This document shows, piece by piece, positions 47,829 to 55,238 of a stretch of DNA of 64,000 bases. Every line of letters begins with the position of its first letter. Position 1 is the stretch's first letter. Source of the stretch: Adineta vaga (Eukaryota > Animalia > Rotifera); contig CP075496.1 in assembly GCA_021613535.1 (NCBI GenBank), forward strand, positions 4,216,001-4,280,000, written 5' to 3'. The position numbers were made by a program, and so were the translations under genes. The notes below the pieces were generated by a model. The model had not been told where the DNA came from. It did no database searches and saw nothing but the letters and a program-made list of their open reading frames with translations.

Positions 47829-48288
47829 ATGACCACACAAAAGTTTATCAATAAAGGTAAAATATCATAATTGTCCATCTTAGTTATCTCTAAACCGTAT
47901 CTTCTATTTAGTAACCATGGAATTTGGTCGACGTCTATTTGGTGAACAAATTCGTCGTGAACCAGCAACATTGAAAGAACAATATCGAAAATTTCAATAT
48001 TATCAGACCACTCATTATAAATTAGGTTTAATGGAACATGATCGATTATGGGGTGAACAACCAGCTGTTAAAGAAGCAATGCGTCGTTTACGTATAAGTG
48101 AACCGGAATTATGGGATGAACGATCATTTCGTATTTCACGTGCTATCAATTTTGATATTAAGAAAATGTATTTACCAAAAGATGAATGGCTTCAATTTGA
48201 AAATGATGTACCGTATTTGGAACCATTTCTTGCCGAAATTGAACGCGAACAAGCGGAAGAAGAACATTGGAAAAAAGTTTTGGGTTAA
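47829..48288 (+). CDS. UQCRB: Cytochrome b-c1 complex subunit 7 (QCR7); intron 47857-47911
   Basis: YKLGLMEHD, VKEAMRRL, ERSFRISRA, LPKDEWLQFENDVPYLEPFLAEIERE..E.E.W. Confidence 0.9.
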
Positions 48289-48505
48289 ATGATAAAACAT
48301 AAGAACGAACCATTTCCTTTCCTTCAGATTTCCCGAACACGCATATTTTCCTATCACTCTCTTTCTCTCCCTGGTTTTTCTCGTAGAGTTTTAGTATGTG
48401 AAAATACGCGTTTAGATCCATCTGCTCTAACTTTTGTTGTAATTCTTCATTTTCGTTTCATTTACCTGAAAATTTTTAGTTTATTTCAGATTAATTGATT
48501 AGAAA

Positions 48506-49087
48506 ATGACAAATCAAAACGATGATAAAGATGATGATTTAGGTGTTAATGTCGTCGAACCGGATGAAAATGAATGGAGAAAATTTATTGATGAGTAAGA
48601 TAGTTTAATTAATATAAATTTTAAAGCAAATGTATCATTTGATTTTAGAATGAAATATGTTCGAGCTTTAGAATATGTTCTTCAAAATGCACCTGTTCGC
48701 GCGAAAGATCTTGATAAAAAGGTATTTAGTAAATTGAATCTCATGATGAATAATTGAAATTTGATGAAATCAATTTTGTAGAAAAAAGCTGCGCATATGG
48801 CATTATCAACAATGATGAAAATAAAAGCAAGTGAAATTCCAGACGCTGTCAATTCAATACCTGTACCATTACGTGATACATTAATGAAATATATTTACAA
48901 AGGTTTTGAAAATCCGAAAGATTATACAAGTAGTGCGTTGTTAACATGGCATGAAAAGGTTTGTTTTTTTTCACCCATTTTTTTGTTTAACGAAAATAAT
49001 CTATCGTATAACTTGATATTTTAGGTTCTTGGAGCTACAGGTCTTGGTTCGATCGTTCGTGTTCTTACTGATCGACGAACTGTATGA
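48506..49087 (+). CDS. ARPC5: Arp2/3 complex subunit 5 (p16-Arc), 4 exons
   Basis: [44 protein letters not shown]. Confidence 0.92.
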
Positions 49088-49355
49088 ATTAGTTAAATCG
49101 ATCGTATATGAATGAGACATTCCAACAGTGATGAAATTTTCTTTTGGTTTTTACGATTCTTGTGCAATAATGCATAGCGATGAAATCTTGTTTGTCTTTT
49201 CTTTTTTTTTTCTGCTTGTGAAAGTCTATTCTACATTCATTTCTTCCTTTTTCTGAACAAACTATAATTAACGATTATTATCCTATGTGTGAGAGTGCGT
49301 GTGAATGAGAACGATTTTTTTAGAGAAATTCTATACGTTTGTCTTTGATTTGTAG

Positions 49356-51164: not shown

Positions 51165-54100
51165 ATGGTCGAAACGGGTTCACCGTCCCGTGATTTAAAA
51201 AAACGACATCGCAGTACAAGCAGAGAAAGGTAAATTACAAAATCCATTATACTATTTCTTCGAGAATGATTGTTATTTTATATAGAGAACATCGTCATCA
51301 TCGATCTCATCGTGATGGAAATGAAAAAAAACATCGACATTCGTCACCAAAACGATCAAAATCACCTGAGTAATTTATGTATTAGATTGAAGATTGTTTC
51401 TTATCATATATTTTTAGGTCAAAACGTCGAAAAAATGACGAAATTAATAAAGGAAAAAAGTCAACGAATGATGATATAGAAGAAGGTGAAACAATTGGTA
51501 ATGAATCAACAAAAAAAAATAGCGAAACAAATGGAGCTAGTACATCAAATCGTGTACCATTATCATTAGAAGAAATGCTTGAAAGAAATAAGAAAGAACA
51601 AGAAGCAATTGCAAAGGTATGTAAAAGACGAGATATTCACAAAATCTTATTTAGAAGTAGACGATAGGTTTTCGATAAAATATTTTAAATTAGAGTCAAC
51701 ATTGAACAATAACAATTTACTTTTCGATTGTTTTATAGCCTAAATTTCTAACGAAACAAGAACGCGAAGCTGAAGCATTACGACGACGACAAGAAGAAGC
51801 TGATGCTATTCGTAAACGTAATGAAGAATTACGTAAAAAACATGCAACATTTGTAAAGGAAGGTGAACAAGCAGCAATCAAAGATGATCGAGAACGCGAG
51901 CGTGAACGACGTGATCGTGATCGACATCGACGTGAGAATAAAGAAGAACAAACAGGAGATCGAGCAAGTAAGTCAAGAAATTCGTTCAGATTTGTCATTT
52001 CATATTATTTATAATATATATATGTATATTTAGTTGTTGATGAAGAACGTGAAGAAGCTGCTGTCAAAGAACGATATCTTGGTATTGTGAAAGTGAGAAG
52101 ATACTTTTTTCTGAATACATCTTTTCGAATAATAGTTCTTCTAGAAAAAACGCAAAATTCGTCGTTTAAATGATCGAAAATTCGTTTTCGATTGGGATGC
52201 AGGTGAAGATACGGCTGTTGATTACAATCCATTATATAAAGAAAAACATGAAATACAATTTTTTGGTCGTGGTCATATAGCTGGTATTGATATAAATAAA
52301 CAAAAGAAAGATCAATCAAAATTCTATGGTGATCTACTGGAAGAACGACGTACTGATGGCGAGAAAGATCGAGAAAAAGCTCGATTGAAATCTGATAAAG
52401 AAAAAGATGAGAGACGTCGCTATGATGAACGTCATTGGACAGATAAGAGTTTAGAAGAAATGATGGATCGAGATTGGCGTATTTTCAAAGAAGATTATAA
52501 TATTACAACACGGGGTGGAAATATTCCACATCCATTACGCTCATGGGAAGAAGCTGGTTTGGAAAAAAGCATTCTAGATGTTATTAAACTTGCTGGATAC
52601 AAAGTAAGATGATACTTGAAATGTTTCTATGAGAGAAATAAAAAAATATCATTTTTTTCAGGAACCAACACCTATTCAAAGACAAGCTATTCCAATTGGT
52701 TTACAAAATCGAGATGTTATGGGTATTGCAGAAACTGGATCTGGTAAAACAGCAGGTAAAGATATCAAATAGATGAATGATGATTTTTTATTTTATATTT
52801 TTCATGATTATTTTAGCGTTTCTTATTCCTCTCTTGGCATGGATTCGATCATTACCAAAAGTTGAAAGGTAAGATTATTGAATATGGAATAAAAATAATT
52901 ATGACAAGTGTGAGTTGTTTTTATTTTTTTTTAAGATCTGTTGATGCGGATAATGGACCGTACGCACTCATCTTAGCGCCATCTCGTGAATTAGCACAAC
53001 AAATTGAAGAAGAAGCAGTCAAATTTGGAAAAGTAAATATTCACCCTACTAGATAGAGTTTTAAAACGAATTGATTGAATTTCTTTCTTAATTTTTAGCA
53101 TTTGGATATCAATGTAGTCTCCGTTATTGGTGGTTTATCTCGTGAAGAACAAGGTTTTAAACTTCGTCTTGGCTGTCAAATTGTTATTGGTACACCAGGT
53201 CGTCTTTTGGATATTCTTCAAAATCGTTATTTAACATTACAACAATGTACTTACTTAGTTATGGATGAAGCTGATCGTATGATAGGTAAAAAAAGAAAAA
53301 GAAATTCTTTTCTAGATCATAAATATTTATCTATGACTTTTCCTTTCTTTTAGATATGGGTTTTGAGGCTGACGTACAGAGTATTCTCGAGTATTTACCA
53401 GTAACAAATCAAAAACCCGATAGTGACTTAGCAGAAAATACAAGGTAAGACTTCTTCGTTCAAATTCAACAAACTCTTTCTATTATTTATTTTCTCTTTA
53501 TGTAGAGATTTTAATTCGAAAGATAAATATCGTCAAACTGTCATGTTTACAGCTACAATGACACCAGCAATCGAACGTTTAGCTCGTACATATCTTCGAC
53601 GTCCTGCTTCAGTTTATATTGGTTCAGTTGGTAAACCAACTGAACGTGTTGAACAAATTGTTATTATGTGTTCAGAAAATGATAAACGCAATAAATTACT
53701 TGATATTCTTGAACGTGGTATTGATCCACCAATTATTATCTTTGTCAATCAAAAGAAAGCTGTCGATGTTCTAGCTAAAGGTTTAGTTAAGAAAGGATAC
53801 AATGCTTGTGCATTACATGTATGTTTGCTAATTTTAGAAATGATATGAAATTGATTTTGTTGTAATTTTAGGGTGGAAAAGGTCAAGAAATTCGTGACTT
53901 AGCTCTAGCTCAATTGAAACAAGGCCAAAAAGATATTCTTGTTGCAACTGATGTTGCCGGTCGTGGTCTTGATATTAAAGATGTTTCAGTTGTACTTAAC
54001 TATGATATGGCTAAAACTATTCAAGGTAAAATTGAATTGAATTTTTTTGAAAAAAACATTACAAAACGTGTTTTGTTTTTAGATTATACACATCGTATTG

Positions 54101-54306
54101 GTCGAACAGGTCGTGCTGGTAAAGCAGGCAAAGCAATTACATTTTTAACCAAAGAAGATTCTGCTGTATTCTATGAATTGAAAGAAGTAATACTTGAATC
54201 ACCTGTATCTCAATGTCCACAAGAATTGATTAATCATCCAGATGCACAAAACAAACCTGGAACTGTGGTTACTAAACGTAATAAAACTGCCATTCTTTGT
54301 GCATAG
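51165..54306 (+). CDS. DDX23: DEAD-box RNA helicase Prp28, multi-exon
   Basis: [76 protein letters not shown]. Confidence 0.95.
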
Positions 54307-54591
54307 AAAGAAAGACTTCATTATTTTTTTGTGGTTTAATCGTGATTTTTTTTTGTGTCTCTGTCTTGTGAATAAAAGAATATCGTATGAAATAAAATGA
54401 TGACGTGAGGTTTATTAATGGAAAATAAAAAACAACGTTTTTCATTCTGTTCGATGACGTTTGTTATTTCATCAACAACATTTTCTTGCGCAATCGTATA
54501 GTAAAAAATTGACGCATGTATTTCTACAGAATATATTTTCGATTTATTTTCTTATATAAACTCGAGCTTTTTCTTTTCTGTATCCTAACAG

Positions 54592-55238
54592 ATGGAATCA
54601 TCTTTATACAATCGTATTTATCAACGAGTTTCTACTGAAGTCAATAATGATGAACAACTTTGTACATATTTGGCCGAAATTTGTACTGATTCTAATAGTC
54701 ATTGTGATGATTTACGGGATATTATTGATACGATGGTTAAAACAAGCCATCCGAATGTTTCCGAAACCCGTCGTCAACATCTTATCTATTCTTTGCTCGA
54801 TATGATAGAAGAAGATCGAGATAAAGCAAATACAAGTGATAGTAATGAAACAAAAGATGATGTTGAAGACGATATTGATCTTGCTGAGAAAACTGAACGT
54901 GATGGTGAATGTAAATTATGTGGATGTACTCAACGAATAACAAGTATGAAAGACTAAAACGGTTCTCTCTTTTAAAAAATTAATTCATATTTTTATTCTT
55001 CACAGTTCATCATATGATTCCAAAATTAATTCTTAAACGAATGAGAAATTCTGGTAAAGAATCTGTTGATGTCGCTAAATATTTAGTAGAAGTTTGTCGA
55101 CCATGTCATAATGAAATTCATCGTATTTGGCCTCACGCTGAATTAGCAAAAGAATATCAAACAGTTGATATGCTGCTAGAAGCACCAGCTATTCAACCAT
55201 ATCTTAATTGGAAACGAAAACGAGAACGAACATCTTAA
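54592..55238 (+). CDS. Uncharacterised protein with a C-terminal HNH-like Zn-binding domain; intron 54944-55005
   Basis: Spliced CKLCGCTQRITIHHMIPK...VEVCRPCHNEIHRIW fits the CxxC...HH.IP...CxxCH...H pattern of small HNH proteins. Confidence 0.7.

Follow-up and report, generated by a model that had tools for sequence, protein, structure and literature searches.

How does an animal express six unrelated genes that follow one another head to tail, some of them with the acceptor-like AG of an intron directly before the start codon? The question is raised by the cluster UQCRB-ARPC5-YjbQ-UPRT-LIN52-DDX23 of the bdelloid rotifer Adineta vaga, which is followed on the same strand by a gene for an HNH-like protein. 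The cluster lies on contig CP075496.1 of assembly GCA_021613535.1, a genome of 100.8 Mb in six contigs with a GC content of about 31%. The stretch analyzed, called the window here, comprises 64,000 nucleotides (nt; positions 4,216,001 to 4,280,000 of the contig), and its own numbering is used throughout. In the original prediction, made from the letters alone, the genes had been proposed to form an operon resolved by spliced leader (SL) trans-splicing and driven from the divergent region between TOM40 and UQCRB. The analysis reported here leads us to regard it as probable that the six genes UQCRB, ARPC5, YjbQ, UPRT, LIN52 and DDX23 constitute one SL-resolved polycistronic RNA polymerase II unit.

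RNA 3′ ends and boundary-crossing RNA contigs

The RNA data consisted of Logan contigs of four runs from four studies, aligned over positions 46900-51800. Ten GT..AG joints were present in these contigs, all of them at internal introns of the genes, and since the introns are absent the contigs are derived from complementary DNA (cDNA). In run X5, only three poly(A) loose ends were found on the plus strand of this 4.9-kb stretch, namely at 48490, 49356 and 49859, and all three start at the base immediately 3′ of a predicted acceptor AG (48489, 49355 and 49858, respectively). The corresponding contigs run from 48309 to 48490 at the 3′ end of UQCRB, from 49122 to 49356 at that of ARPC5 and from 49477 to 49859 at that of YjbQ, and continue with 11, 21 and 13 non-templated A, respectively; as the genome also has an A at the next position, the G of the acceptor may be where the tail starts. 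Internal mispriming of oligo(dT) is excluded, since the genome is not A-rich at the three sites. Moreover, the depths of the tailed contigs (450, 90 and 64, in the same order) are comparable with those of coding contigs, so that the poly(A) ends at the AGs are the main 3′ ends. By our own arithmetic, three such exact hits in spacers of 217, 268 and 71 nt would arise by chance with a probability of about 2e-7.

Because the upstream RNA ends at the acceptor AG, no intercistronic DNA is left: the spacers of 217, 268 and 71 nt are the entire 3′ untranslated regions (UTRs) of UQCRB, ARPC5 and YjbQ, and the cistrons abut. In the original prediction, the T-rich spacers of 62-106 bp had been considered tight for a 3′ UTR plus a promoter; this is refined for the three junctions with an observed 3′ end, where the spacer is the whole of the upstream 3′ UTR.

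Additionally, RNA was found to cross gene boundaries. Contigs without introns span four of the five internal boundaries in runs X1 and X17, i.e., those between UQCRB and ARPC5, YjbQ and UPRT, UPRT and LIN52, and LIN52 and DDX23, and at the first of these the contigs continue over 48489/48490 into spliced ARPC5. Ordinary cis-splicing of 5′ UTR introns at the candidate AGs, which the original prediction had named as a finding that would speak against it, was not observed: none of the ten joints from the four runs ends at such an AG, and in these data the AGs are thus not cis acceptors of 5′ UTR introns.

Acceptor-like sites and their conservation

The acceptor-like sites were all found in the sequence as predicted. 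YAG directly abuts the ATGs at 49356 (ttgtag), 49859 (tttcag), 50782 (ttctag) and 54592 (aacag), and tttcag was read at 48484-48489, 16 nt 5′ of the ARPC5 ATG (48506), as well as at 51145-51150, 14 nt 5′ of the DDX23 ATG (51165). A further site, tttctag at 47793-47799 (AG 47798-47799), had not been part of the prediction; it lies 30 nt 5′ of the UQCRB ATG, and A. steineri, A. ricciae and Rotaria magnacalcarata share its ttctag/ATTTATTTTTCTTGATAAACA (the slash marking the position after the AG). Among the 211 ATGs that open at least 60 codons on either strand of the 64-kb window, six directly follow a pyrimidine tract and YAG, and four of these six fall inside the 7.4-kb cluster, a concentration which argues that the sites are more than chance. 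Elsewhere in the window, the ATG at 30993 (plus strand, 115 codons open) is the only other first ATG located directly after a pyrimidine tract and cag, and it may represent another trans-splice-type start; a similar site at 56394 is probably the cis acceptor of the spectrin gene.

At every internal junction, YAG/AT(G) and the preceding 15-20 nt are kept in up to eight sequences, while the remainder of the spacer diverges. The block tctttgatttgtag/ATGGCATGG at the junction of ARPC5 and YjbQ is kept in eight sequences, YAG/ATG at the LIN52 start in six and YAG/ATA at the DDX23 site in seven. In an alignment of eight sequences, a TACTAGC-like element about 30 nt 5′ of the UPRT acceptor was detected, which is a plausible branch point. 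The element GTGTGAATGAGA (49290-49302), located about 55 nt 5′ of the YjbQ acceptor, is kept in most of the relatives compared; it is unlikely to be the usual poly(A) signal because it is too distant from the poly(A) site.

The conservation of gene order, proposed in the original prediction as a check, was borne out: the order UQCRB-ARPC5-YjbQ-UPRT-LIN52-DDX23-HNH-like is kept in four assemblies of A. steineri, in A. ricciae and in six assemblies of R. magnacalcarata, i.e., in two bdelloid families, and more divergent DNA contigs retain it in part. In R. magnacalcarata, neither TOM40 upstream nor tRNA-Trp (transfer RNA) and spectrin downstream of the block are present; since the flanks in Rotaria differ, synteny breaks on both sides and the block is intact. 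The public gene models of R. magnacalcarata and A. ricciae contain fusions of ARPC5 and YjbQ (265 amino acids) and of ARPC5, YjbQ and UPRT (460-471 amino acids). These are likely annotation errors caused by boundary-crossing RNA, an artefact typical of operons, and with respect to annotation the models of the relatives would thus wrongly fuse ARPC5, YjbQ and UPRT.

A second copy in the genome exists for UPRT only among the cluster genes (G000:C1:8286248-8286889, about 75% DNA identity). This paralogue stands alone, with no cluster genes within about 9 kb, and the context of its open reading frame (..FQ/M) suggests a ..cag/ATG start there too. With such a start at a gene outside any cluster, AG/ATG would be a sign of trans-splicing rather than of an operon in itself.

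Spliced leader genes in the genome

Bdelloids have been known to trans-splice an SL since 2005, and more than half of bdelloid mRNAs carry the SL, as stated where PMC1925144 cites Pouchkina-Stantcheva and Tunnacliffe (2005). Using the 23-nt consensus rotifer leader GGCTTATTACAACTTACCAAGAG (PMC3795323 Table 1), 59 genomic matches with at most two mismatches were obtained as compared to none for the reversed control, in agreement with a bdelloid genome of the A. vaga kind and with the bdelloid SL trans-splicing to which the original prediction had referred. One of the copies reads in full ...GCTTATTACAACTTACCAAGAG/GTAAATACC..., with the donor GTAAAT following the leader. Judged by the GT donor behind the leader, the 59 copies are SL RNA genes. 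They are mostly arranged as head-to-head pairs with leaders starting 154 bp apart, and belong to one SL family, whose variants differ by a single base (C replaced by A at position 10 or 13, or by G at position 18). SL RNA genes were located on contigs C1, C2, C4, C5 and C6, with dense arrays at C5:9.88-9.93 Mb and 10.91-10.93 Mb.

Metagenome scans for the SL tail joined to the YjbQ start and for SL plus ATG were blank, and since the general pattern was blank too, they were uninformative. Short Logan/ENA contigs matching the proteins of the relatives were all genomic DNA with introns, and no SL-bearing cDNA was among them.

Poly(A) signals and the end of the unit

Neither AATAAA nor ATTAAA was found in the five internal 3′ UTRs of A. 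vaga, and the internal spacers of A. steineri, A. ricciae and R. magnacalcarata are mostly free of them as well; A. steineri is an exception, with an AATAAA located 20 nt 5′ of the YjbQ acceptor. After the DDX23 stop codon, two to three AATAAA or ATTAAA hexamers are present in all four species, and in A. steineri, A. ricciae and R. magnacalcarata at least one AATAAA is located within about 60 nt of the stop; the AATAAA hexamers of DDX23 are therefore a candidate for the conventional poly(A) signal that would end the unit. The spacer between DDX23 and the HNH-like gene, which begins with these conserved signals, measures 285-593 nt across species, and a TATA-like element is located at -34 to -39 of the HNH-like gene in four of four species. 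No TATA-like boxes were found in the internal spacers. ATTAAA and AATAAA are both present in the 3′ flank of the HNH-like gene.

Based on the AATAAA signals after DDX23, the conserved TATA-like box and the lack, in A. ricciae, of an AG in front of the ATG, the HNH-like gene is probably a separate transcription unit, which probably has a TATA promoter of its own, and DDX23 is probably the last cistron. The inclusion of the HNH-like gene in the operon, which the original prediction had entertained, was probably wrong for the same three reasons.

Proposed mechanism and alternative explanations

Following this, we propose that transcription of the unit would start in the region of about 480 bp that is shared divergently with TOM40. 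A branch-point-like element would lie in front of each downstream cistron together with a pyrimidine tract and an AG, and the 23-nt bdelloid leader would be trans-spliced to the base after each AG, so that in YjbQ, UPRT and LIN52 the leader would be the whole 5′ UTR. The upstream RNA would end at the same AG and be polyadenylated without AAUAAA; DDX23 would close the unit with conventional AAUAAA signals, and the HNH-like gene would run from its own TATA promoter. Within this operon reading, we infer the addition of the SL, the single promoter, how the last two junctions are processed and where the unit ends.

Several observations weigh against the proposed operon. The location of poly(A) at the AG was seen in a single run, X5, and no poly(A) end of UPRT or LIN52 was seen in the RNA contigs, where positions 50742-50789 were masked as repeat and two loose ends falling there were left out of the listing. 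The boundary between ARPC5 and YjbQ is crossed by no listed contig, as X1 and X17 have a coverage gap at 49322-49365; a T7 run adjoins this gap, which may have arisen during assembly. Boundary-crossing contigs are, moreover, no proof of one long molecule, since a promoter inside the upstream gene would also give outron RNA. No SL loose end on cluster mRNAs was detected in the four contig-only runs, which is a weak negative because contigs lose short leader tips where a colinear path exists, and the UQCRB contig of X5 starts 2 nt 5′ of the ATG, away from the conserved upstream acceptor. Furthermore, non-operon neighbours in A. steineri are spaced by 221-600 nt and the genome is compact in general, so that short spacing alone is weak evidence.

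RNA crossing the boundaries would also be expected if the genes were independent, with promoters inside the 3′ parts of the upstream genes, short outrons that are SL trans-spliced at the AG, and upstream transcripts that extend into the acceptor and are cleaved at this point. Operons with internal promoters exist in Caenorhabditis elegans and set a precedent for such an arrangement, with which the lack of a contig over the boundary between ARPC5 and YjbQ, the compactness of the genome everywhere and the apparent ..cag/ATG start of the UPRT paralogue outside any cluster would likewise agree. However, an upstream 3′ end at the acceptor that leaves a downstream RNA is polycistronic processing by definition, according to the argument made for Ciona (PMC1488885). 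Spacers of 62-106 nt that consist wholly of 3′ UTR and acceptor, internal spacers that lack the TATA-like element seen at the HNH-like gene, and a block kept intact despite the synteny break on both sides also speak for the operon, and we consider independent promoters unlikely. A related possibility is that two units exist, UQCRB-ARPC5 and YjbQ-UPRT-LIN52-DDX23, the second being transcribed from a promoter in the 268-nt 3′ UTR of ARPC5. This junction has the longest internal spacer and is the only internal one without a crossing contig in X1 and X17, and the 3′ UTR carries further conserved blocks, e.g., GTGTGAATGAGA. Despite this, the poly(A) of ARPC5 is found exactly at the AG abutting the YjbQ ATG, as at the other junctions, and the possible assembly effect at the T7 run would account for the contig break, which makes a division into two units quite improbable in our view.

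We give hardly any credence to an explanation without trans-splicing, in which the poly(A) sites would be conventional and the AGs would either be incidental or be used in fusion transcripts of ARPC5, YjbQ and UPRT or for cis-spliced introns of 5′ UTRs. The SL unseen on cluster mRNAs in the contigs, the fusion proteins predicted in the annotations of the relatives (ARPC5 and YjbQ, with or without UPRT) and the A. steineri AATAAA close to the YjbQ acceptor (20 nt 5′ of it) can be cited for it. Contrary to this explanation, no cis joint was present at these AGs in the four runs, three of three poly(A) sites fall on the AG to the base, the acceptors are conserved in spacers that diverge, and a pyrimidine tract with YAG/ATG is rare elsewhere in the window. 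It would, moreover, have to be reconciled with the 59 genomic SL copies and with an SL present on more than half of bdelloid mRNAs, the figure quoted in PMC1925144.

Comparison with known trans-spliced operons

Ciona operons are devoid of intercistronic DNA, and the upstream mRNA receives its poly(A) on the G of the acceptor AG (Satou et al., 2006, PMC1488885). Sixteen of 18 upstream cistrons lack AAUAAA, and one SL is used for all genes; transcription across the boundary was argued to be obligatory for either mRNA, and trans-splicing may itself create the upstream 3′ end (PMC1488885). The A. vaga cluster resembles the operons of Ciona intestinalis in that unrelated genes are located on the same strand, poly(A) is found at the acceptor AG (at three rotifer junctions) and upstream cistrons are free of AAUAAA; likewise, one SL serves monocistronic and operon genes in Ciona, and one SL family is present in the rotifer. 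By contrast, the rotifer belongs to another phylum, its SL sequence is unrelated, and Ciona operons are mostly dicistronic as compared to the six rotifer cistrons; whereas SL addition at the boundary was proven in Ciona by full-length expressed sequence tags, at the rotifer locus it is predicted.

The SL1-type operons of C. elegans (Williams et al., 1999, as cited in PMC1488885 and PMC7986045) are similar to the rotifer cluster as they have no intercistronic sequence, a poly(A) site that adjoins the trans-splice site and a general SL. They differ in being a rare class in the worm. Moreover, the upstream genes of the worm keep AAUAAA, which is absent from the internal cistrons of the rotifer. 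With SL2-type operons, the cluster would share the grouping of housekeeping genes in one polycistronic unit that is resolved through trans-splicing; however, neither the intercistronic region of about 100 nt nor the AAUAAA-dependent 3′ end nor the specialised SL2 of those operons was seen at the rotifer locus, where the leader search covered one leader and its single-base variants, and a second, operon-specific SL was searched for within this range only. Oikopleura dioica and the chaetognath Paraspadella gotoi have compact genomes, a single SL class and housekeeping-rich operons with short or absent intercistronic regions (PMC7986045; PMC12460157), and are comparable to A. vaga in this respect. 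In contrast, 23-33 nt separate the cistrons in Oikopleura, chaetognath operons were defined by distances below 250 bp together with SL reads, and an exact coincidence of poly(A) site and acceptor is not reported for either in PMC7986045 and PMC12460157.

In the literature searched, no description of a rotifer operon or of its boundaries was found, and rotifers are only listed among the lineages with trans-splicing and operonic transcription (2025, PMC12460157). The points of interest at this locus are the base-exact coincidence of poly(A) site and acceptor and the presence of the intronless bacterial-type YjbQ as an internal cistron. The former provides base-resolution evidence that a bdelloid cluster is processed like Ciona operons; rotifers and tunicates would then be convergent in this respect.

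Origin of YjbQ

YjbQ scored 155 bits against TIGR00149 (cut-off 67.75) and is 62-68% identical to bacterial-named hits (Ignavibacteria, Planctomycetales, Brenneria), with only rotifer-like hits being higher. The gene is present as a single copy in the genome. As it is intronless and bacterial-like, YjbQ is probably an old horizontal acquisition that is common to Adineta and Rotaria and is now an internal cistron. Bdelloids are famous for horizontal gene transfer, and the arrangement may help to explain how foreign genes are expressed in them, as a bacterial-type YjbQ within the unit would need neither a promoter nor a 5′ UTR of its own. Tentatively, and with more doubt than confidence, this may be extended to the notion that bdelloids are a second, independent animal lineage with the mechanism hypothesised for Ciona, in which spacer-free operons would offer landing pads to bacterial genes that were acquired horizontally and have no promoter.

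Gene identities and layout

The seven genes were confirmed to be unrelated and to be arranged head to tail on the plus strand, and the stop-to-ATG gaps re-measured from the sequence (217, 268, 71, 106, 62 and 285 nt) are equal to the predicted values. Genes were identified by Pfam, exon by exon (Table 1). Six of the predicted gene names, those from UQCRB to DDX23, were verified in this way; the seventh gene had no Pfam hit and its name is backed by a match below the cut-off. Look-ups of the exact YjbQ and LIN52 proteins of the window returned no entry.

Table 1. Features of the A. vaga cluster and its flanks in window coordinates.
Feature	Position	Strand	Evidence or remark
Candidate promoter region, divergent TOM40/UQCRB	47343..47828	.	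TOM40 ATG on minus strand at 47342; putative promoter function
Gene 1, UQCRB (cytochrome bc1 14-kDa subunit, UCR_14kD)	47829..48288	+	PF02271, E=8e-23
UQCRB exons	47829-47856, 47912-48288	+	Intron joint present in RNA contigs
UQCRB 3′ UTR, complete, ending tttcag	48289..48489	+	Poly(A) at AG; without AATAAA or ATTAAA
Gene 2, ARPC5 (Arp2/3 p16 subunit, P16-Arc), four exons	48506..49087	+	PF04699; three GT..AG joints in RNA contigs
ARPC5 3′ UTR, complete, ending ttgtag directly before YjbQ ATG	49088..49355	+	Poly(A) at AG
Gene 3, YjbQ/UPF0047, intronless	49356..49787	+	PF01894, E=1.6e-43; TIGR00149
YjbQ 3′ UTR, complete, 71 nt, ending tttcag directly before UPRT ATG	49788..49858	+	Poly(A) at AG
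Gene 4, UPRT-like	49859..50675	+	PF14681 (UPRTase) on two exons; joints in 4/4 runs
UPRT exons	49859-50232, 50303-50607, 50665-50675	+	
UPRT-LIN52 spacer, 106 nt, ending ttctag directly before ATG	50676..50781	+	Crossed by spliced contigs in X1 and X17
Gene 5, LIN52, one exon	50782..51102	+	PF10044, E=2.4e-11
LIN52-DDX23 spacer to tttcag acceptor-like site	51103..51150	+	Crossed by spliced contigs in X1 and X17
Would-be DDX23 5′ UTR	51151-51164	+	
Gene 6, DDX23/PRP28 DEAD-box helicase, many exons	51165..54306	+	PF25430, E=5e-31
Three AATAAA hexamers, DDX23 3′ UTR	54371..54429	+	Starts 54371, 54391, 54424
TATA-like box, TATATAAA	54553..54560	+	39 nt 5′ of HNH-like ATG; putative promoter function
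Gene 7, HNH-like protein	54592..55238	+	Exons 54592-54943, 55006-55238

The identity of DDX23 is accompanied by DEAD and Helicase_C domains in the DDX23 gene models of the relatives. Regarding the seventh gene, exon 2 matched the HNH nuclease-like NCBIfam family HlpB (NF058586) with E=1.3e-8, below the curated cut-off. No Pfam hit was obtained for its exons even at E=10, and no Pfam family is recorded for the whole protein in relatives; its neighbours in the Atlas are small bacterial HNH-containing clusters. By its sequence, it may be a second bacterial-type gene. The motif CxxC...HH...CxxCH of the HNH-like protein is interrupted by an intron.

In the divergent TOM40/UQCRB region, no genuine RNA contig lies within 47392-47826; the putative single promoter is supported by this and by the lack of TATA-like boxes in the internal spacers. 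Loose ends at 47674 (47674-47691) and 48053 (48053-48077) from three runs were considered as a hidden minus-strand exon or a chimera, and both possibilities were rejected: the ends are spurious since they stem from a CHD-like gene (G000:C5:9714594-9714814) with which 18-25 nt are shared by chance. Just 3′ of the cluster, two tRNA-Trp(CCA) genes are located on the minus strand at 55423-55496 and 55569-55640; none is found at the equivalent place in R. magnacalcarata, and one is present there in A. steineri and A. ricciae.

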